A stretch of 64,000 nucleotides of DNA, taken from contig JAKMXF010000066.1 of NCBI GenBank assembly GCA_024704765.1, forward strand, positions 860,050 through 924,049, written 5' to 3'. Of the stretch, positions 3,701-17,400 are shown piece by piece. Within the stretch, counting starts at the first letter, position 1. Every line of letters starts with the position of its first letter. The notes beneath the pieces are model-generated. The model did not search any database. It worked only from the letters and a program-made list of their open reading frames with translations, and was not told the DNA's origin. The position numbers and the translations under genes were made by a program. Origin of the DNA: Oopsacas minuta (taxonomy: Eukaryota; Animalia; Porifera).

Positions 3701-6454
3701 CTGTGTTGTTAAGAAGCTGAACTCTTCAAATGCTTTTGCTACATCTTGGTCTCCAGCGTGAGGAGGTGCTTCCTTTCCTAACGTATCTTCTGTGTGTCTA
3801 AAAATAGAACAAATATATGTAAATATTATGGTTCAGACACTTCGAATATAAATAATATGATATTTAATACTAAACATATATTGGCTACATACAAATAGAC
3901 TGGATACAGTTATTCATGGTTGTAGTGTGTCTACTACAATTCTCTACCATCTCCGCCACTTTTAACACCTCATAATCCCTTCCCATTCCTCCCACAATCT
4001 GTAATCCTAGAGGCATAGCTCTAGCAGATAGGCCAATTGGTATACTAACAGCTGGGAGTCCTGCTAAGCTGGGCACAACTAGGAACTGATCTAATTGGCT
4101 CGCGGTGACAGGTCCCATTTTATTGATATGGTCCCGTGTTGGTGCCTCTCCTGAAGCAGTGGGTGTGATAATGACATCACAACCTTTAGGATTAGTTTCA
4201 GTTCTGAATAGAGATGATATTTGACGTGACAATAAACCACGCATACGTGTAGCCTGTTCGAATATATGTTTACCTTTTGACGTAGACAAGTGTGTACCAA
4301 GGATTATCCGGTGCTTAACAATAGCCCCCAATGAATAGCTCCGTGTATCGCTTATAAACTCATCAGCTAGGTTATAACTAGAACTATTTACGCTCTTAGT
4401 TCCATAAACAAGTCCATTATATCTTGCCATATTAGATGCTACTTCTACAGCACATAATGTATTGTAGGTTGCTATTGAATATTCTATATGAGGAATCTGT
4501 ATATTATGGTGGATGACGTCATAATTTGATACTAGATCTTCCACCGCTTCCATAAACCGTAATTTCATACATTCTTCTATAGTATCATCGTTGCTAGGGA
4601 GATATATTCCTACACTGAGAGGCGTGTTGCTATGGTTACTCTCAGGAATGTTGATAGAGGTTGGATCGAGAGGATCTATCCCTTTCACAATTCTAAATAC
4701 TTTCGTAATGTCTTGAATATTTCTGGCTAGAATTCCAGGGCAATCCATCGAGCATACCAATGGTACAATTCCGTATCTACTCAGAGCTCCGTAGCTAGGT
4801 TTAAATCCTACTATCCCACAGTAAGCGGCTGGTAATCTCACGGATCCTGATGTGTCAGATCCAAGCGCTGAGTCAGATTGTCCAGTTAGGACTGCTACTG
4901 CTGAACCCCCGGATGACCCCCCTGGTACCCTGGGGTACCTGAGGGGGACATCTGTCTCCCCCTTAACTTCTCCCCAGGGGTTGTAACACGGTCCGAAATG
5001 GGAGTGGATATTAGCAACTCCCATAGCAAACTCATCCATATTACAGTGACCAATCAGATTGCCACCAGCTGCTAGAATACGCGCCACAACTGTAGATGTA
5101 TAAATAGGCTTAAAATCAGAGAGAAAAGCAGACGCGCATGTCATTGGTTGGTTCTTAACAGCGAAATTATCTTTGACTGAGAATACCATATGTTCTAAGG
5201 GTCTATTTATAGATGAGGGGCTGTATTCTGTTATAACGTCACTGGATTTGTATGCCCGTATGAATGCATTGAGATGACGTAATTTGTTTACTTGTAGGAA
5301 ATGTGTCATGTAGCTATTATTAATAAACAACAAATTAAGAGTAAACAACCATAATTATTTATCACCTAGCAACGCAAGGAATGTCATAAATCCATGGTTC
5401 GTATAATTCTACAAATATTTACTCACATAAATTCATTGGAATCATCATCATCTCCATCTAGTCCTGGTCTGCTGGGTCTGGGGGGTATGTCTGACGAATC
5501 ATCGAATGTAGTTACAGGATCCCCCAGGGGTACCTCACTGAGAATCACCTCACTTTCCTGTAAACAACAATAAATACAAAACAAATAAAAATATAAACAA
5601 ATACCTTGAAAGCATCATGTTCATTACTCTGATTTTCTTGAAGGAATACAACTTCTGTCTCCGATAAAGGCTCAGGATAACTTCTCACGTTCTTAACCTT
5701 AGCTCTAGCCTCCAGTACTCCCTCTGTATAACCCAGCTCCCTCAGGTACCTGTTGTGAAATGGAACTATAAGGTGTTTGTATCGATAAGTGTGTCATATA
5801 TAATACACATTCCTATCTCTATTATTGGAACTAACTGTCTAAGTACGTTCCTTCCTTCTGTTAGATTAGTGCTAGATGATATTATATCAGGTTCTAAACG
5901 ATTAAATAAATAGTTAAACGAACATCTAAACTATTAAATTAACAGTAACAACCTGATTCAAACTCTATTTTATTATCTGGGAGAATTAGATCAGTTCCGT
6001 GAACAAGTTTATGATTCTTTGATCTTTAAATATAAACAAAAGGTGTGAAAATATGTAACTTTATAATATGATGACTAACCTTTCTTGTTTCAGTGCAAAC
6101 TCCAGCATTTTAATTCTCCTAATTAGGTCTCTTTTCAAATTTTCATGTCCCTTCCTCTGTCCATTAAGGAATGCAATCTTTGACTAGAATAAACAAACAA
6201 ACAAAAGTAAACAGCCTGGAACTAATTTTTAATTGGAATTAACACTAAATAGTTAATTAGTTCCAATAACATACCTGTAACTCTACTTTCTCTAGCTCCC
6301 AGCTAGATCTCTCCCTCTCGAATCTTACCCATTCAGATTTTAGGAAATGCAGTACTCCAGGAATGTTGTATGAACTCTCTGACCCAGGGGGAGGAGGAGG
6401 AGCCTGTCCATTGAGGGATACCTGTACCCCTGCCATACCAACTGGTATATCCAT
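738..6454 (-). CDS. STRN: Striatin family protein (multi-exon; N-terminal caveolin-binding/coiled-coil region, C-terminal WD40 repeats)
   Basis: Exon 1 YNIPGVLHFLKSEWVRFERERSSWELEKVELQ, exon 2 KIAFLNGQRKGHENLKRDLIRRIKMLEFALKQER, YLRELGYTE, DVAKAFEEFSFL, then WD40 exons (LEFHPSESFLLTASEDTTVKLWN; INRVVSHPTSPVIITAHED; AKFHPTLSYFASAGADALCKIF). GT-AG boundaries checked at 6275/6274 and 6184/6183. Confidence 0.95.
1349..1389. repeat. Solo 41-bp copy of the NHL upstream core inside a striatin intron
   Basis: aacttgagaataccaattgacatcaatggttgctatggtaa matches 237-277 except at the CpG (TGACATCA). A shorter fragment, catcaatggttgctat, lies near 568-583. Confidence 0.85.
3281..3382. mobile_element. MITE-like element, family CAGTCAA(T/C)TCCTGTTA
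   Basis: Terminal inverted repeats cagtcaattcctgttatatctaa ... ttagatataacaggagttgattg, with TA on the right flank. Intronic. Homologous to 16954-17007, 21690-21848 and 27458-27624. Confidence 0.75.
3885..5309 (-). CDS. QRSL1: Glutamyl-tRNA(Gln) amidotransferase subunit A (mitochondrial GatA), single long ORF nested in a striatin intron on the same strand
   Basis: Amidase signature SVKDNF, NMDEFAMG, NPW, GGSSGGSA, LGSDTSGSVRLPAAYCGIVGFKPSYG, SLAGLPAVSIP, PLGLQIVG. First ATG at 5309, preceded by taataatag-ctac. Flanked by striatin exons at about 5430-5559 and 3701-3807. Confidence 0.93.
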   Translation of the reverse strand: MTHFLQVNKLRHLNAFIRAYKSSDVITEYSPSSINRPLEHMVFSVKDNFAVKNQPMTCASAFLSDFKPIYTSTVVARILAAGGNLIGHCNMDEFAMGVANIHSHFGPCYNPWGEVKGETDVPLRYPRVPGGSSGGSAVAVLTGQSDSALGSDTSGSVRLPAAYCGIVGFKPSYGALSRYGIVPLVCSMDCPGILARNIQDITKVFRIVKGIDPLDPTSINIPESNHSNTPLSVGIYLPSNDDTIEECMKLRFMEAVEDLVSNYDVIHHNIQIPHIEYSIATYNTLCAVEVASNMARYNGLVYGTKSVNSSSYNLADEFISDTRSYSLGAIVKHRIILGTHLSTSKGKHIFEQATRMRGLLSRQISSLFRTETNPKGCDVIITPTASGEAPTRDHINKMGPVTASQLDQFLVVPSLAGLPAVSIPIGLSARAMPLGLQIVGGMGRDYEVLKVAEMVENCSRHTTTMNNCIQSICM

Positions 6455-6562: not shown

Positions 6563-6882
6563 GAGTCTCTTTTATAACCAATAGTGTGTGCCTAGTTGAC
6601 TAATTGGTAACTATTCTATACGTAACAACCCTTCTGGACCCTTGGAATGCCCTGGGATTTACTTGATACCTTGGTGGTAATAAATTTATCAACTAAGCTC
6701 ACGGATATGCTCTTACTCAGGACGATTTTTGTATAGAAATTGGGGAAGATAGATATCAAAGAGTAGAACCTACTTGTAATTGGTATTTGTTATCTCTTCT
6801 GGAAGAATTCTTTAATTAAATTAGTTTCTATTATTTATCAAATTTGTTTCTATTCTTTTAATATTTATTATTTGTTATAGCT

Positions 6883-9800
6883 ATGGATGATAGTATAGTT
6901 GATAAGTTGACAATCCTGAACAGGTAATTATTATTTATCTACGAATATAGTACGTGACTAATATCCGGTCGCCTCATTACTTGGAATTTGGTAAATAATG
7001 TCGATTTGTTTATTTTTAGGACTTTGAGTAACTTCGTTATAATTCTATCAAATCAAATTACTGAATATGAAAGATTCTACAAAACTGTTGAATTAATTTT
7101 GAAACAAACTGAATTATTACGTCACGACCCCGCATTCCTCAAGCTAGTATGCGTTACCAAGGAAGAATCTCAGACCCCAGCAACCGAAATCACCCCAAAG
7201 AATTTCATTATTTTTAATTTAGAAATTTTCAAAAAATTACTTGATAATTCCCTTCCTAGCAACGAGGATAATCTCAAGAATGTGGTACATTTGTTGATGT
7301 TTATATTTTCACTTGGTCCACCTCTACCACCAATAGACAGATACTTTGATTCAGGCGCCAAAGCTACCCTCTCTAACTACGATAATCTTATCAAGAATGT
7401 GAATAATCCTGTCCAGCTGTTCCAAACTGATGAATTTCTGAATCAGCTCTGCACTTACGTCACTGTTATTTATGAAAAAGCGGGCAATCCGATTGGAGCA
7501 GATGAATGTATGGATCTGGTTATACAGGTAGTTTAATTATCTCTATATTTTGACACCTAATTATTACTTATACCAGCTGTTCACAACCTTTTTCACCTGT
7601 GGACCCCCTGTTGTCCTCATGCACCCACGAGAGGTCCATATACTCCAGTTTAGAGACCGCTAACTTATACTAACGTCCAATTAATCTCTTTATTATCATC
7701 ATATAGACCTGTAAGCTGTGTAGAGGATATGACCCATTCATGCATAGTTTCGATACTCCTGTTGCTAACCTATTCAAGATACCTATTACATACATATCTA
7801 ACATTCCTATTGACAACTCCAGTAACCTAGAGCTTGTATTAAGACTGATAGCTGCTTGTCCATCCTTGTTTATTGACCTAGATGAAATACCTCAGCCAAA
7901 ACTAACCAAACTAATCAATATACTAAATATATCACATATAAATATACACATATGTTTAGCTGTGATGTCATGTGTTTACAGACTGTTTACTGTATCAGAA
8001 CTGACACTAGATGCTTGTCTGGATGATGACATGATATCTCCGCTAATGATAGAGTTTTCATTCCTGATTAGGCGCCATATTGAGGGCGGGGAAATGGAAG
8101 ATAAATTACTGAGAATGATATTTATGGTTTTAAAGTTAATGACGTCATGTGAAGAGTCTAAGATTATCCTATCCGGACAACAAATTATCGTTTTGGAATG
8201 TGTGAATGTAGTTAAGGAATGCAGAAATCAATCAGTTTTCGCATTAGGAATTCTAAATTCTATCTCGAGATATCTCTCAAGAGAGAATTTAGCATTGATT
8301 CTACGCGCCATCTCAGATTGTTTAAAACATGTTAATATGCAAAATGAATTCAGGAATTATTTCAATTCTGTCATTTTACAGCTGATATTGATACATGGAA
8401 TTTATGAGGATCTTGACAACGGCTTATCCCCAAAGGAATTCGTTGATATTTCATCTTGTGCTATACAGGAGTTGAATGATAAATCTGCTTTGAATCTCGG
8501 TTTGAAGACTTTTGGAATTTTATTTGAATTTCCAAAATTTTGCGAATTAATTTCTGATGATTTTATTGGCGCCTTAATCAAGCTATTTTTAGAATCTGTT
8601 AGACGGGAATCAGAGGATTTGATTGGTCATATTTCTCACTTATTCTGTGATTTAGTTCTTCAGGATTGTAGTAAGGGAGTTGTTCGTATTCTTGAAGTGT
8701 CAAAGTTTGTGCCTCAACTTGTTAAGGTCAGTTGTAACTCATCCATGGTATCTGACATCCTATGGACAGTTTCTGCCCCTTGGTCAGTCAGCTGTTTGTC
8801 CTATACTGTCATGTTTATCAAGTTTATTTATAGCTGATTCTCTCAGAAGAAAGACCAGAGTATTTAATCCATTCTATACGAATATTGAAGTCTGTTAATA
8901 AGAATGCTAGAGGGAGTATGAAATGTGAACAGATACAGTATATTAATCTATTTGATAAGCTATCAAGACTGACATTAACTTTTAAACAGGTACTACTACT
9001 TAACACCTCATAGTTCCAATTCAATTATTGTTACTCACATTCCATTTCACTATTTAGGAGGAGTCAGGGACAGCACACCTATTCGACATCCAATCAAATT
9101 CCATCTATATCCTCTGGTCGTTGAGTTGTGACTCCTCTTACTTTACAGATAAATTCCTACCACCCACTATCATAACTAACGTAATACAGTACTTTCGTAA
9201 TGAGATTAATAACATTGAAAATGCGTTAATGGATTCATATGGTTACAGAGCCTCTGTTCATATTCTCTGTAATATTGCTGTAACAGATAGAGTTAAGATG
9301 GATATTGCAGGTAGGTTAGAATACAGGGGAACTGTTACTTGATCCCCTCCCCATGGAACTGATAATTGTATCCGTTGTGGACACCATTCCTCTTAATATA
9401 CAATAGAACTCGGAGAAGTACGAACTGCCCGCGTTCTACACTCAAAAATTCTAATTATCTTCCATGAATCAGCTGTTATTTATTAACACCTCTCTCCCTA
9501 GCAACGGGTATACACACAGAACTATTAATGGTACTTCTACAGCTGTTAGAGATAGAGGAAGTACCATGGATGTTAATAGATATTACTCTAAGATTAATTG
9601 ATACTATAACAGCTGATGAGGTTTATAAAGCAGAACTAATTGAATTCGGACTTATAGAACCATTAGTTCACATACTTTTATTCCAGCCTAGCAACGAGTT
9701 ATTGTTCAGGGTCTTAGGTATGCTAAACAGCTGTACTGGTATATCAGAAGATTACAGACGTACCATGTGTACAGATCAGTTGCTAGGGATAATTATAGAG

Positions 9801-10271
9801 CTCCTGAAGAGTACCAAGGATGGAGGTGCATTTTGTGTGTGTTGTTGTTTACTAGCGAGTATGGCAGAGTCACAAACAGAAGCCAGGTGACGAATTCTTT
9901 AGAGACATACCCGTTGTTATGTAAATATCCATGATTGAGTTAACTCTCGTTTTATCCAACAAGGACATGTAGAATACCAGCTGATATCGAAGTATTAAAT
10001 TGTACAAATATGCTCTCAAACCTTCAGTACAGGTGTGAATATTTATTTGTTATAGGTTAATATCAAGCTATGACGTAATGACACACTTACTAACAGCTAC
10101 AGAGGATAAGGAACTAGTTAGTTCGTGTAGCCAGGTAGAGAGATGGAGTCTTAATCTTGTTGATAAAGTATTCCTTAATTGTATTAATACTCCTACTGAT
10201 ATGACGTCATTATTCCTTGGACATAGAACAGAGCTTAATCTCCTGAGAGAGGAACACTTCGTAGTTGACAG
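6883..10271 (+). CDS. Uncharacterised alpha-helical (ARM/HEAT-like) protein, about 900-1000 aa; probably the N-terminal part of a fusion with the ATE1-like domain
   Basis: ATG at 6883 with a phase-2 intron 6924-7019 joining ORF 6988-7536. Long Leu/Ile-rich helical ORFs at 7740-8837, 9121-9342, 9528-9890 and 10078-10329 (e.g. ELIEFGLIEPLVHILL, LLFRVLGMLNSC). No family recognised. Confidence 0.7.
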
Positions 10272-10324
10272 GTTGCTATTTATAGCACCAAATATATTTA
10301 ATATTATTGGGATTATTTTCCTAG

Positions 10325-11629
10325 AATGATGGGACTTGTCAGACAGGGCTGTACAGATTGTGAGACCCGCGGTTGTGATAGTTGTACCCAATCTGAATCT
10401 CTGAGCCCCGAGGAGGTGTGTGTCTATTCAGAGAGCTTGTCCCTCTCTCAGTATCAACAGCTGATCAACAGGGGATGGTATAGGAGAGGGGGAGACCGCA
10501 TGTACCGATGGGGTAAGAAATTAAAACTAGAATGTGTGAATTGGGAGACAAGAATTAGAGTTAAGGAATTCAAATTAAATCAGAAAAAGACCTTTTCTAG
10601 GGTTCTTAAGAAAATTCCTAAGAACCTAACCGTTACCACGGTACCATCCAGGTATGTTGTTGTCAAATATGTATTATGCATATTTCATACAGTATCTGGT
10701 TGCTAGGTTCACAGAAGAAGGATACAATCTGTATAATGAATATCAGCTGGTTAAACATTCCAGATCCCGAGTATCTAAGCAGGGTTACATCGATCATGTG
10801 GTTAACACCTGTGTGCCCATTGTGTGCATAGACGGTATAGATTATGGGACATTCCATCAGGAGTATCGTGTTGCTGGGGAGTTAATAGCAATTGGAGTTA
10901 TTGATATTATACTAGAAGGTTTGTCATCCATGGTTCAATAATACGATTTTACTATAGCAACCATTTATTATAATGGAATGTCAATGTATCTCTAGGTATA
11001 GTATCAATCTATTTCTACTACAAGACTACTAAGGAGGTTCTTAAACTGTCTCTTGGGAGATACTCATCTCTTAGAGAAATACAATTTGTACAAGAATTGA
11101 ATTTAGTAAATAATAATATTCAATATTATTATTTACAAGGCTGGAGTAAATATAACAACAAATTAAGTTATAAAGGAGATTATAAACCTGTAGAGTTTCT
11201 GGGAAGATGTGTGTCCTCTATGTGGACAGAGGACCCTATTGAAAGTAAAGGTACAAAGAAATTGGTTCCCTCCTGAATGCTTATTAGTTATTAAACCATT
11301 GATGGTGGATTTAGTTATCTGCTTGTATAATCCATGGTTTAATATCTAATAGTGTTTATTGTTTGTTTGTTTGTTTGTTTGTTTGTTTAGATTCCAACTT
11401 TAACTCGCTAGAAATCGACAGATCAGAATGGTTAACACATTCTATTCCTGTTAGTGTTAATAGCATTCAAGTTTATATCAACGGATTGTTAATAACATTC
11501 CAACAACTCAAACTCGTTGCTAACCTAACTCCTCAACAACGTGACTATATTGGTACTTCTCTTGAACAACTGTGCTATGCTATTGGTCCTGAATTAACTC
11601 AAAAGCTAATTATATATTTTCACACCTAA
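10325..11629 (+). CDS. ATE1: Arginyl-tRNA--protein transferase (ATE1)-like domain, 4 exons (10325-10651, 10707-10918, 10996-11250, 11391-11629)
   Basis: CxxC...YQQLINRGWYRRGG; FTEEGYNLYNEYQLVKH; YGTFHQEYRVAGELIAIGVIDII; IVSIYFYY...LSLGRYSSLREI; YYYLQGW...LSYKGDYKPVEFL; eukaryote-type tail ...LCYAIGPELTQKLIIYF. All three introns are GT-AG and phase-compatible. Confidence 0.88.
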
Positions 11630-11673
11630 ACACACAAATAATTTTTAGATTTGGTTAAAACTGGAGAGATATA

Positions 11674-11725
11674 TTGTTGTTGTTGTTGTTGTTGTTATTG
11701 TTGTTGTTGTTGTTGTTGTTGTTGT
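11674..11725. repeat. (GTT)n microsatellite
   Basis: Direct reading. Similar tracts: (GTT)n at 12212-12250 and (TTTG)n at 11359-11388. Confidence 0.95.
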
Positions 11726-11809
11726 GTGTATCTTTTTAAATATTGATGAACAAATACCTGGCTATTTTGTTTATTGTTTGTTTACTTGTTTGTTTATTTG
11801 TTTACTAGT

Positions 11810-12211
11810 ATGAGTACAGCACAAGAGAGACCTAATCAACCTCTCCAATATCTTAACGGTAGAATTAATCTGCTACAACTCAAAGAGCATTTTAAGGTAT
11901 TTCTATTTATACCTCATAGTTACTTAACTGTGTAATTGGTATGTGTATATCATCTCTACCCTCTCATAGGGTACATTCCTGGACTTGGTGTCCTCACAGA
12001 GTACAGGGTCTAAAGCACTCGTATGGGACAAACAGTTGTTGTCACCTCTTAACTTAATAGTAGAGTACTCATCTCTAAGAGAGAGATCTGTTGATCACAT
12101 GTTCCATCTTGATACTGAATTTGTGGTTAATTCTGACATTCCATGCTACGTGTTTGTTGTTAGGGATGATTATAGTGTTATTGAAATGCTAGCTAGGTAT
12201 GTTGCTATTGT

Positions 12212-12249
<38 letters not shown>

Positions 12250-14267
12250 GCTCTAATTAATATATTTACACATTAGAATAGCCCTGAAGTGTAAATCCTC
12301 ATTGGCTGCAGGCAGTATGACATTCAGTCTGATATTTATCCCTCGTAAAAGCACTGTAGGCCTAAGACTGCTTCAGGATCTGGGAGCTGTGCATCTTTTC
12401 AAGAAGATCGAGTCTCTACATATTGACTTGATCCCCTTAGACTCTGATATCCTATCAATGGAGAGACCTATTGACTTCAGGGAATGTTTTGTAGAAGAAT
12501 TGACAGATCTGTCATATGAAGTATGTTTGTTATTGTTTATTAAGAGGGTATATTCATATGTTTACGAGAGGTTGTTATTTCATGTGAGAGTGAGAGTTAC
12601 TGAATCTTGACTGTATGTGAGTATACATTCCTATGTGTATTTAAGGTATCCAAGTCTTTGATGACTCTACAAGCCCTGTATGGACCTTTCCCCCGCGTAT
12701 TTGCTAAGGGTAGATGGTCTTGTCACGTGTGTGACACTGTTAAGCGTATGATCCGTCTGGTAGACAAGTCGTTCACCTCTCAGCCCTCTCAGATAGATGC
12801 AGTTGTCCTCCTAGACAGGACAGTAGACCTTATAACACCTTTGGTTACCCCCCTGACATATGAGGGATTAGTTGATGAACTATTTGGTATTAATTATACT
12901 GTAACTCAACTACCAGCTGATAGATTCCCTGAAGACGAAGGGAAAGGTAATTCATATGGACCATAAATCTGTATACCTAATTCATTGTTTACTTTATTAG
13001 GAAATAAACAAAAGAAAGTAACACTTAACAGTTCTGATGAACTATTCACAGACCTCAGAGATTTACACTTCGCGTCAGTGGGTGGATATCTAAGCAGGAG
13101 AGCAAAGAACTTGAATGTAGTAATGGATGAGAGACACATTGCTCAGTCTGTGTCACAACTCAGAGTATTTGTAGCTAAAATACCACACATACAGGTAGTT
13201 ACCATGATTACATTGTATGTCATCATGAATTCCTATACACCATTTTGGTATCCAGGTAACAAAGCGTAGTCTAGGACTACATACAACACTAGCAGAACTT
13301 GTGAAGGAGGTTATTGATGACGTAGCATTTTCGGAGTTGAAATCCCAAGAACAGAAGTTCTTAGAAGAAGTGGATCACGATAGGATCAATGACTATATCG
13401 AGAAGTTGATTGGTCGACAGGGTGATATTAAGAGTATTCTGAGACTTATTTGTTTACAGAGCCAGGTAGAGTTCTTTTGTGTCATATGATTAATCATATT
13501 TTCACACCTTTTAAAGGTAGGTAATGGATTAAAGATTAAAGTGTTTGAACACTACAAGCGGGAGATAATACACGCATATGGAGTACAACATATAGTCACA
13601 TTCCATAGATTAGAATCAGCTGGGATGTTGAGGATACAACAACAAGCCTCAAAGACATATTCATCTCTAAGAAGGTAATGAGTTATTGTTTATAAAGAAA
13701 AAGCTGTTCCCAATATTATTCACATCTCTTCATGAGACAAAGTGTGACATCTGTGAATTCCTTCCTATTCCATTAGTATCCATGGTCCTATTATAATGTT
13801 CTATTTATAGAAGCTTGAAGTTGACTAGACAAGTGGACGTAAGGAATGCAGAGGACATAGCTTATACTCACTCAGGGTATGCTCCTCTCTCTGTTAGACT
13901 AATTGAACAGCTGATAGTCAAACCAGGTAATATGAATATAAAAATATTAACACCTTATATTATAACTGTATTGATAGGTGTTGGTCCAATCAGCTGGAAG
14001 AGAGTAGATGATAGTGTAATGCGACTCATCCCTGGTCCACATACAGAATTCTCCCCACGGTCTGAGCAGGAGGGGGTAGATACTACTAATGAGGGTCAGA
14101 AACTTATCTTAGTATATTTCATCGGTGGAGTTAGTTTTGGAGAAATCTCAGCTTTGAGATTTCTTTCACAAACTGAAGATTCTATTGCTAACTTTATTAT
14201 AGCCACTTCTCGTCTTAACAACGGAAATAAGCTAATGGAATCTATGCTATCTACACGTACATCTTAG
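11810..14267 (+). CDS. VPS33A: Vacuolar protein sorting 33 (Sec1/Munc18 family), multi-exon
   Basis: LNGRINLLQLKE, GSKALVWD, IDLIPLDSDILSME, IDAVVLLDRTVDLITPLVTPLTYEGLVDELFGI, LNSSDELFTDLRDLHF, YSGYAPLSVRL-type motif (HSGYAPLSVRLIE), LVYFIGGVSFGEISALRFL. Confidence 0.95.
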
Positions 14268-14429
14268 AGATTGTTTATTGTTTACAGATTGTGTATGTAT
14301 ATAGTTGTTTGTTTATATTCATATGGTTAAGAGTATGTACAATCAATTCTTGATATATCTAACCTCAAAGGTCCACAAATACGACTCAATATTTGTTATT
14401 CTTAAGTCTTCAGTTAGCTAATCAGAGAT

Positions 14430-17400
14430 ATGAGTAATCCTCAGGACGAGTTCGATAAGGCTAGAGCTTATCTACTGACATCAAGTGATGTGTCAAATAT
14501 TAATCTGTAAGTACTTTTGTGTGTTGTTGTTGTTGTTATTATACTCTCCTCCATCTAGATACGATCACCTTAGTACTTGTTTGAAGAAGGTGTTATTAGA
14601 GAGACCCAATAATGCTGTAGATTATATAGAAGATATTAGCAGGAAGATTAAGAGGGAGAAATTGACCGCCAAGACAGATTCTCTAGTGGTTAGTTGTGTA
14701 TTACAATATGGTGTACAGTGTGTAACTTCTCATAAACGGGCCTTTGGAATGTGGAATTTCTGGAAACAGCGAATTCCTAGTCACATACGAATCAACCTCC
14801 ACAGACGGGAAATGGTTCAATTTCCCGTTTTTAGAGGTTACATTGTTTCTGGTATTATGGATAATGGATACTTAACACTAATTTATCTAATTAGAATGAG
14901 CCTGGGGCCAATAGCGAGGCGGTACTAGCAGAGGTACACAGGGGGCTATTCACACCTCCAGCGGGTGATGAACAGGAGAGATTAGGTGAGGACGATGCCT
15001 TGCCCCCCTACCCTAATCTCCTGGAGCTGATCGGGTACTTAGAACAGGGAGGAATAGGTGTCGGAAAGACAGAGGCATTTAGGATATTTTTAGCACTCAA
15101 ACAGCTGACTGAATCTCATAAACTCCAATCTGTTAGATTCTGGGGTTAGTTTCTTTATTTGTTAATTGAAACAAACAAACAACTAAAATGATTGTAAAAT
15201 GGAATTATAACTAAGCACGAATAAAGTTCCTATTTCTGAAATACAGATACCAGTTGGCCTCTCACAACATATTATAGTGTGTGTTAGTTCTCCTGAGGGA
15301 GAGAGTATCCTAATATTTTGACGATAATAATCACTCATAAGAATATTTCCTGCTTGATCCAAGCAGAAGTATAGATGTTCATACTGGCCAAACCACTCAT
15401 GGGTAACACACGAGTTTATTAGGTGTCCACTTCTAGAGAAGAAGTGGACAGAATTTGGACTTATGTCTAGCACTACTATGCTGTTTGGAGTTACTTTAAC
15501 GTCTCTAGGATAGGTCAGCTGATGAGTACCCAAAGAAATTATGAATTTAAGTTCATTAGAGTAAATACAAACTCTGTGATTGTTAGTATCAGCTACAAAC
15601 ACATCTCCGTTATAGTCTGTACAGAGCCCACGTGGATGATATAGCTCTCCCTCTCCGGATCCTCTGGTACCAGTCCTAGCTACATTGAAATCACTGAATT
15701 GGAACAGAGTGCAGCAATCAATATCTGTAACTAAGACGTGATCTTCTATTAATGCTATACCCCAGGAACTCTTGAGTATGTCTTGTCCAAAATTAGTGAC
15801 GAAGTTTCCCTCAAAAGTAACAACTTGTATACGACAGTTACCAGAATCAGCTATGTATATCAGCTGATTAGGTTCATATATAGCTAGACCTCTAGGTCCA
15901 CATAGTTCATTATTGGCTATCCCTTTCTTCCCTACAGTTATGACAGGCTGCTTCTTGAGAGAGTAGTCCAGCTTCCATTCTTTCATCCCAGCAGACGTAC
16001 GAGCATTCTTTGATTGTTGTTTTCCCATTTGTTTATTGGAGTTTAGTTTGTTAGAAATAATATTAACAAATACAGAATAGACTCTATTTATATTTGTGTA
16101 ACTTGAGAATACCAATTGATGTCAATGGTTGCTATGGTAATTGTGTATTCTAATTTTAGTAACTTTATTCAATCTATTCCTTGTATTATCATTCGTTTCT
16201 TCAGGAAAGATATTCGGGACTGTTCGTAACTTTATAATAGCAGAATGTGAGTTTGTAGAGGGAGAGGGTATGGAGGACACCACAGAGGAACAGGCGCCAG
16301 ATACAGGGGACCAAGAAACAGCTGATAAGGATGAGGATGCTACAGAGGATAAGGAGGAAGCTCCCCCTAAGCCTAACTACAAGCCCCCGCCTGTTATACC
16401 CAAAGAGGAATTCGGTACTGGAACTAATAAGAAAGTGTATTTTGTATGTAATGATGGTGAGTATTGCTGTTGTTATTGTTTGTTTCTTTGTTATTATTAT
16501 TATTATTATTATTATTTTGTAGCTGGGAGTGGGTGGACTAGACTACCGCCTATAACACCCACTCAAATTATCGCAGCTAGACAGATTAGGAAATTTTTTA
16601 CAGGAGATCTGGCTGCAAAGGTAATTATTTCTCAGATCAGCTGTTTATTAATGACTGGGTTTATGTACTTACTCAATTATTGTATTTTCACACCTTATAG
16701 GTATTCAGCTATCCACCATTTCCTGGAAACGAGGGGAACTATTTGCGAGCGCAGATCGCTCGAATATCCGCAACCACCCATATATCTCCTAGTAATTTCT
16801 ATCTGTTTGATGCTGACGAGGAAGATGAGATGGATGCAAGAGACACATTTGCTGTTAATGAGGAATTTGAGAATATTCCTGTTAATGAGCTTGTTGATGA
16901 CTCTCTGTCTAGATGGGTACATCATGTACAGTTTATTCTACCACAAGTATGTACAGTCAATTCCTGTTATATCGAACACGGATATATCGAATACCCGCTT
17001 ATAACTGTATATTGTTATAGGGGAGGTGTGTCTGGTTTAATCCCCTTGAGAAGCCAGATGATCAATTCGATGATGAAGATGAGGACGATGATGACAAAGA
17101 TGGAGCAGATGAGCCACAACCAGAGGAAGGTCCTCCTCTCCTCACCCCTCTTTCTGAGGACAAGGGTATCTGTCACTTTTTCTATCCATTATAATACAGT
17201 CAGGTTATCTGAGTGTCCACAGGATGTGTTCGCTGGTAAAATTATTGCGACCGCTATCCTATCTTATTGATTAATTGAGGTCAATGATTTGTTTCATTAA
17301 TTAGATCCTGACTGTATTTAACAAGTTATATATCTCCTTTAGAGGTCGATGGAATGCCCAGCTGGTCACCTTCTCTAAGTAGTAGTCTAATACCCAGCTA

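Follow-up and report, generated by a model that had tools for sequence, protein, structure and literature searches.

A probable fusion of an ARM/HEAT-type solenoid to an ATE1-type arginyltransferase domain across a 53-nt intron in Oopsacas minuta, a glass sponge

Introduction

Do two overlapping reading frames in the genome of the glass sponge Oopsacas minuta encode two proteins or one? The locus lies within a 64,000-nt stretch of contig JAKMXF010000066.1 (GenBank assembly GCA_024704765.1, positions 860,050–924,049, forward strand), hereafter the window, whose own numbering is used for all coordinates. An open reading frame (ORF) at 10078–10329 (+), the last of a large helical protein, closes with TGA 10327–10329, and the next ORF (10326–10706), which resembles the arginyltransferase ATE1, opens at ATG 10326, so that stop and start overlap as ATGA. 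An earlier reading of the letters alone (the original prediction) had placed this A-TGA-TG overlap at 10326–10329, exactly where the ORF positions put it, and had proposed that removal of a short GT-AG segment fuses the two proteins, with two cistrons as the alternative. Our analysis indicates that this is very probably one 11-exon gene whose main mRNA encodes a 1203-aa ARM/HEAT solenoid-ATE1 fusion, made by cis-splicing of a 53-nt intron and belonging to a family of such fusions. The proposed fusion is supported by the joint 10271^10325 in RNA, by a splice phase kept in seven lineages, and by two homologues, L010 and L011, in which the join is uninterrupted.

The junction and the gene model

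The junction segment (10272–10324, 53 nt) begins GTTGCT and ends TTTTCCTAG. When it is removed the frames unite as ...HFVVD-R-MMGLVRQGC... in a stop-free coding sequence of 1203 codons, as had been proposed, and the product is thus shorter than the ~1300 aa first given. When it is retained, 18 residues are added before TGA 10327–10329, giving a solenoid protein of 878 aa and a separate ATE1-like protein of 343 aa; the read-through tail, LLFIAPNIFNIIGIIFLE and a stop, is the one originally described. The acceptor AG (10323–10324) lies 1 nt ahead of ATG 10326, the first full codon of ATE1 exon 1. The GTTGCT donor had been called weak, but it is not unusually so for this gene, in which the RNA-confirmed intron 10919–10995 begins GTTTGT.

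The gene model, built from GT..AG boundaries, occupies 6883–11629 (+) and comprises seven upstream solenoid exons and four ATE1 exons, with a spliced coding sequence of 3612 nt (1203 codons) and no internal stop:

6883..6923 (+), exon 1, with start ATG 6883; RNA joint 6923^7020
7020..7527 (+), exon 2 (aa 14-183), conserved N-terminal region of the solenoid protein; RNA joints, kept in relatives
7707..8726 (+), exon 3 (aa 184-523), ARM/HEAT-like alpha-solenoid; AlphaFold2 (AF2) model and structural matches
8834..8989 (+), exon 4 (aa 524-575); RNA joints 8726^8834 and 8989^9058
9058..9310 (+), exon 5 (aa 576-659/660); RNA joints, next intron (9311-9501) at zero RNA depth
9502..9886 (+), exon 6, weak ARM-repeat signal; homologous to the ARM part of the L010 paralogue and the L011 ORF
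10056..10271 (+), exon 7, last solenoid exon, ending ...HFVVD + AG (phase 2); model, RNA and cross-species alignment
10272..10324 (+), junction intron, 53 nt, GT..AG; RNA joint, position kept in seven lineages
10325..10651 (+), ATE1 exon 1, ATE_N region (CxxC, NRGWYRRGG); ATE_N 20.9 bits, human ATE1 37-108
10707..10918 (+), ATE1 exon 2, carrying the first half of ATE_C with the motif FHQEYR..GELIAIGVIDI; RNA joint 10651^10707, ATE_C 35.1 bits
10996..11250 (+), ATE1 exon 3, carrying the second half of ATE_C with YYYLQGW...KLSYKGDYKP; RNA joint 10918^10996, ATE_C 44 bits
11391..11629 (+), ATE1 exon 4, 79-aa C-terminal region with stop TAA 11627-11629; gene model, conserved in relatives

An acceptor-like ...ttatag stands 2 nt before the start ATG 6883, and close to the start of exon 1, at ~6874, the RNA depth climbs from 29 to 204.

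RNA evidence

Four runs from one sample were examined as assembled contigs over 6700–11900. Three were DNA-like, with continuous contigs and no joints in this interval. The fourth (X4) was RNA-like: intron 9311–9501 had zero depth, and nine of the model's ten introns were spanned by GT..AG joints. No joint was reported for the remaining intron (11251–11390), as it sits in a skipped repeat. One X4 contig carries the joint 10271^10325, which skips the 53 nt at a depth of 1347, and even on its shorter side the contig extends for 42 nt or more. The joints to either side have depths of 1162 and 1292, and those of the other confirmed introns (n = 8) are similar; the junction expected of a fusion transcript is thus present, at a depth like that of its neighbours. 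The joint was not found in the sample's three DNA runs and therefore does not stem from a retrocopy.

These data bear directly on a reading of the locus as two cistrons only, in which the solenoid ends at TGA 10329, ATE1 is trans-spliced at 10324, and there is no fusion protein. Such a reading can point to the ATGA overlap and to an acceptor right before an ATG, as well as to the stand-alone nature of canonical ATE1 in the species studied so far (PMC9351520). It is contradicted by the spliced junction in RNA at full depth. Within the window, the stop also lies after the acceptor, so that an upstream cistron would be without a stop and 3'-end signal of its own before it.

A dual output is a different matter, since here the fusion mRNA would coexist with a second form in which a leader is joined at the 10323–10324 acceptor to yield a free 343-aa ATE1, and retention could give the 878-aa solenoid-only protein. 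Spliced-leader trans-splicing has been reported in glass sponges (PMC10282587, PMC7986045), which made the two-cistron alternative a fair one to propose, and the layout of acceptor followed by ATG also occurs at the starts of the ARM-ATE1 gene and of the next gene. Against a second form, no loose end was seen at 10325 among 24 of the 71 loose ends of contigs over this interval, from which rare forms are dropped. Furthermore, the junction contig passes the joint by 42 nt on its shorter side, beyond the reach expected of a k=31 graph at an abundant branch point, if we understand the Logan assembler correctly.

Orthologues in related glass sponges

Using single exons as queries, the long contigs of relatives in six other assemblies were reached through exon 3 fragments and ATE1 exon matches. 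This provided seven lineages (the window, L001/L005, L002/L003, L006, L007, L008 and L009), across which ATE1 exon 1 has 65–85% DNA identity. Where flanks reach, the relatives share with the window a gene order of amidase, striatin, NHL, ARM-ATE1 gene, Sec1 and radial spoke. Nearly all exons are collinear in the relatives, exon 4 being without a match in some loci. In L001, L002, L003 and L005, a frame-aware search for the GT..AG intron of highest similarity also arrived at this junction intron; the search left several other introns and most of L006 without a solution, and our claim accordingly concerns collinear exons and the junction.

In all seven lineages the last solenoid exon ends GACAG/GT and an AG stands exactly 1 nt before the ATG (AG/N-ATG), such that splicing yields ...VVD-R-M(M/L)G.... 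The junction introns are 46, 47, 53, 169/179, 181 and 363/471 nt long and include all three residues modulo 3. The read-through tails range from 0 to 19 aa and are mutually unrelated, the read-through stop in three lineages being the TGA within a GTGAGG donor, and cross-species protein similarity of the solenoid ends at aa 860. The ATGA overlap is thus peculiar to the short intron of O. minuta, and what the lineages conserve is the splice phase. Rather than a sign of two genes, the overlap is a side effect of how short this intron is.

This conservation of phase rather than of overlap is a further point against two cistrons, as is the lack of any AATAAA or ATTAAA in the junction intron or the next 200 nt in the window, L001, L002, L003 and L005, which leaves no poly(A) signal between donor and ATE1 at these five loci. 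For dual output, the same alignments show a Met at the first codon of ATE1 exon 1 in all seven lineages and none at this position in L010 and L011; this Met, however, lies within a near-invariant block, so its conservation proves little. On balance, we regard dual output as unlikely.

Several features of these loci were observed in passing. In most of the related loci whose contigs extend into the flank, namely L001 and L005 and also L002, L003, L006 and L007, the NHL-repeat gene lies directly upstream of the ARM-ATE1 gene. In L001 the exon 5–6 intron (9883–14609) is 4.7 kb long and includes an ORF of 937 aa that matches nothing in Pfam; the intron measures 1.6 kb in L005, a sister contig of the same sample. 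A third contig of sample ERZ25072730, L004 (10001–12100), carries the gene up to ~residue 302 and then a 363-aa ORF on the opposite strand, and may represent a disrupted copy or allele. The junction introns of L001 (15613–16083, 471 nt) and L005 (14775–15137, 363 nt) contain a tandem array of ~36–39-nt units, as judged by eye, that differs in length. Lastly, at 9360–9380 of L006 the 3' end of the 47-nt junction intron, GTCGATAG/G, echoes the exon end GTTGACAG/G, both encoding V-D-R; this may be chance, or a trace of a duplication that gave rise to the intron.

Homologues with the join in one frame

Two further loci carry the ARM-to-ATE1 join without an intron. The first, L010, was reached from a 54%-identical ATE_N fragment and is a second locus, a paralogue, in the assembly of L006. 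A single tblastn high-scoring segment pair (HSP; E=1e-29) spans fusion aa 799–969 in a single frame (...ENFIVHRHFGVTRHSCSNC...), with no intron, stop or Met at the junction within the HSP. The preceding ARM-like exon aligns too (E=2e-6), and the ATE_N match of L010 reaches 27.0 bits. Between ARM-like exons of this paralogous gene, and on its strand, there is a complete ORF for an MFS sugar transporter (479 aa, 7451–8890).

The second, JAAGOD010026543.1 (L011), was found by scanning metagenomes with an ATE_C alignment and comes from the metagenome of a tedaniid demosponge (PMC8518922). It contains a single ORF of 1279 aa with Pfam matches to ARM_ARMC5 (E=2e-8, below cut-off), ARM_PUB, ATE_N and ATE_C (E=7e-26). 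Its ATE part matches human ATE1 at 1e-32, and its N-terminal part matches designed armadillo proteins and importin-alpha. Fusion aa 810–1117 fall in one HSP (E=1e-69) and aa 629–835 in another (E=7e-16), and the 1279-aa ORF has no intron, stop or Met at the junction. At the position of the junction Met, L010 reads His-Phe and L011 Val-Tyr. A metagenome scan with ATE_N patterns gave no match, and word-indexed searches with ATE1 exons returned orthologues and one paralogue fragment only.

Both homologues have the same order of parts as the window gene (ARM-like solenoid, ATE_N, ATE_C) and are homologous to it from residue ~630 across the junction; they differ in that the junction falls within an exon and has no Met, where the window gene has an intron and a Met. 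The architecture thus recurs in L010 and L011, and since the join is hard-wired in both, the fusion is older than the window gene. Judged from these alignments, the junction intron is a plain intron of a fused gene, and ARM-ATE1 fusions are a family, with two or more paralogues in glass sponges and a member in a demosponge holobiont, and not unique to the window gene.

Two homologues without intron, stop or Met at the junction, taken with the RNA joint and the conserved phase, effectively refute two cistrons alone, which we now consider highly improbable. They also bear on the possibility that the joined transcript is a non-functional read-through chimera (a conjoined transcript) of neighbouring genes, without a fusion protein under selection. 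In compact genomes, adjacent genes are often joined by cis-splicing, and support for the fusion in the window is at the transcript level. Splice sites that keep the frame in all seven lineages at the above identities, across intron length shifts not divisible by 3, argue against such a chimera, as does the presence of the fusion in one ORF in the L010 paralogue and the demosponge contig; a chimera is, in our estimation, scarcely probable. The original prediction was to fall if there were neither a spliced junction nor a two-domain homologue: X4 holds the junction, and L010 and L011 have both domains.

The ATE1 part

The assignment to ATE1 stands on the ATE_C domain (PF04377, GNAT-type), which scores 35.1 bits on 10708–10917 and 44 bits on 10998–11249 against a Pfam cut-off of 25, and on human ATE1 being the best Protein Data Bank (PDB) match for three of the four ATE1 exons. 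Exon 1 aligns to human ATE1 residues 37–108 (phmmer E=6e-4), exon 2 to residues 336–360, and exon 3 to residues 365–429 (E=4e-8). The motifs FHQ.YR..G..IA.GVIDI and YK..Y.P align with human and yeast ATE1. KLSYKGDYKP aligns with human PKMKYKGQYRP and yeast PKMNYKANY, and the Lys matching klAte1 Lys304, an active-site lysine (PMC9351520), is present. The last 79 residues (ATE1 exon 4) are 50–62% conserved in relatives and have no Pfam or PDB match.

The four metal-binding Cys of Ate1 (CxxC and a vicinal Cys-Cys) have been described as strictly conserved (PMC9351520). CxxC (C9, C12) is invariant in all seven lineages, and L011 keeps the Cys-Cys (reading E-C-C); at the vicinal position the seven lineages differ, as discussed below. 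Other invariant Cys (C20, C32) might substitute for the vicinal pair.

With canonical ATE1 (human 8TZV/8UAU, yeast 7TIF, K. lactis 7WFX) the sponge protein shares a core of a probable ATE_N and an ATE_C (GNAT-type) domain, in which CxxC, FHQ.Y...IA.GVID and YK..Y.P align. Whereas the canonical enzyme is a stand-alone protein of ~500–520 aa, the sponge protein has ~860 extra N-terminal residues, is without the long insert of human ATE1 (residues ~109 to ~290), has a C-terminal region of just ~80 aa, reads E-C or G-C for the vicinal Cys-Cys, and has no Cys-Pro HRM2 motif in its ATE1 part. The bacterial, Bpt-type arginyltransferases (NCBIfam PRK01305 models, ~240 aa) resemble it in another respect, in that the three core exons are collinear over almost the whole profile without large inserts (ATE1 exon 1 falls on positions 34–102). 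Yet the scores lie far under the equivalog cut-offs, the best structural-sequence match is human ATE1 and not a bacterial protein, and the sponge gene has introns, sits in an animal genome, and is fused to a solenoid.

The solenoid part

The N-terminal part had been described as ARM/HEAT-like; this held at the level of fold class, and sequence matches stayed below threshold. An AF2 model of exon 3 (aa 184–523) is an all-helical superhelix with a predicted local distance difference test (pLDDT) score of 71.7 and a predicted template modelling (TM) score of 0.74; that of exon 2 is of low confidence (pLDDT 42). Foldseek of the exon 3 model gave TM ~0.5 to Ric-8A, p120 catenin and designed ARM proteins, none at E<=0.001, and VIA gave Z of 13–17.5 over ~300 residues to a flat list of ARM/HEAT proteins. 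Among the structural matches are Ric-8A, p120, SmgGDS, karyopherins, beta-catenin and designed ARM proteins; the ranking singles out no family. By sequence profiles, exon 6 had sub-threshold matches only (Arm, 14.9 bits vs 20.6; KAP, ZER1-like_2nd and ARM_PUB), and the other solenoid exons matched no ARM/HEAT repeat model. The N-terminal part is thus assigned, from models, to the generic ARM/HEAT solenoids, as a fold class only. A link to the ZER1/ZYG11 N-degron receptors was considered and set aside, as the similarity is the same as generic ARM similarity (ZER1-like_2nd E=0.083; ZYG11B at VIA rank 42).

Exon 3, the largest solenoid exon (340 aa), returned three orthologous ORF fragments only in a phmmer search of 1.84 billion representatives. 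Similarity to the demosponge protein L011 is confined to residues ~630–860 (tblastn E=7e-16; hhalign E=1.3e-4 in the exon 6 region); residues 1 to ~630 have none (hhalign of exon 3, probability 0.2%), and no relatives of the first ~630 residues were found beyond the orthologue group. Queried with exon 3, ATE1 exon 1 and the L011 ORF, the ESM Atlas yielded either no match or matches confined to generic ARM clusters or short bacterial ATE_N clusters.

Neighbouring genes and sequence variants

A striatin-like first exon (6257–6454, −) lies head-to-head with the ARM-ATE1 gene, 428 nt from ATG 6883, so that a divergent promoter region of its own seems to serve the ARM-ATE1 gene. Downstream, after a spacer of 181 nt, the next gene is Sec1-like and its ATG (11811) immediately follows ...ctag/t. 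Microsatellites of (GTTT)n and (TTG)n occur at 11350–11395 (last intron) and 11665–11806 (the 181-nt spacer). Short pieces of dispersed repeat are found at 7581–7615 and 9980–10012 within two introns, where DNA depth is up 2–4 fold and contigs continue into other sequence. Relative to the assembly, the RNA run and two of the DNA runs have T>C (Phe to Leu) at position 7749, which is probably polymorphic or differs through the assembly. At 9548 the RNA contig has G where the assembly and the same-sample DNA contigs have A, a synonymous change (TTA to TTG) that could reflect RNA editing or else an allele missing from the DNA contigs because it was dropped.

Discussion

In our reading, ordinary cis-splicing of the 53-nt intron 10272–10324, exactly at the domain boundary, makes the join between the two parts. 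The encoded product is an ARM/HEAT-like solenoid of ~860 aa linked directly to a compact, 343-aa ATE1-type arginyl-tRNA-protein transferase domain. Like ATE1, this domain would transfer Arg from Arg-tRNA onto acidic or oxidised N-termini, with the solenoid as a built-in docking platform that may select or position substrates or partners. The fusion protein is predicted to be an active arginyltransferase.

Some of the data pull the other way. RNA support consists of assembled contigs from one run of one sample, at the transcript level, and such contigs give no isoform ratios and drop rare forms; junction splicing in the six relatives was read from DNA. The ATE_N (PF04376) match of 20.9 bits, for ATE1 exon 1 alone, is below the Pfam cut-off of 27. 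The vicinal Cys-Cys position is E-C or G-C in all seven lineages, and given this change the metal binding or activity of the ATE domain may differ. Finally, the solenoid's scaffold role and its docking of substrates or partners are predictions.

Spliced-leader trans-splicing resolves operons in nematodes and tunicates, among them the SL1-type operons of C. elegans, in which the 3' end of the upstream unit and the acceptor of the downstream one fall together. The sponge locus shares with such operons two coding units on one primary transcript and an acceptor right before the downstream ATG, but in this case an in-frame donor splices to the acceptor in cis, giving one protein. A search for an upstream poly(A) signal found none, nor was a leader seen at this acceptor among the contig ends listed. 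According to a 2021 review, there had been no reports of operons in glass sponges (PMC7986045), and the O. minuta genome paper mentions neither spliced-leader trans-splicing nor operons (PMC10280926). A more speculative idea, which we think quite unlikely, is that the junction intron is a switch, with cis use of the acceptor giving scaffold-tethered ATE1 and trans use (by a spliced leader) giving free ATE1, so that cis/trans competition would set the ratio of targeted to untargeted arginylation; in its broader form, siliceous sponges would have ARM-ATE1 fusions as their main or sole arginyltransferases, and different solenoids would confer different substrate ranges. Returning to the fusion made in cis, the locus presents an acceptor-before-ATG layout that resembles an operon boundary and yet is an ordinary cis intron, in a spliced-leader genome, which calls for caution in operon calls made from sequence alone.

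Substrate choice by ATE1 is poorly understood, and ATE1 is known as a stand-alone enzyme dependent on separate partners. No description of ATE1 fused to an ARM-type domain was found in the literature. The fusion offers constructs for testing tethering, such as the full-length protein against the ATE domain alone and pull-downs with the solenoid. Conservation of an ARM-ATE1 fusion in at least two sponge classes, together with its paralogues, suggests that tethering can set the specificity of arginylation.

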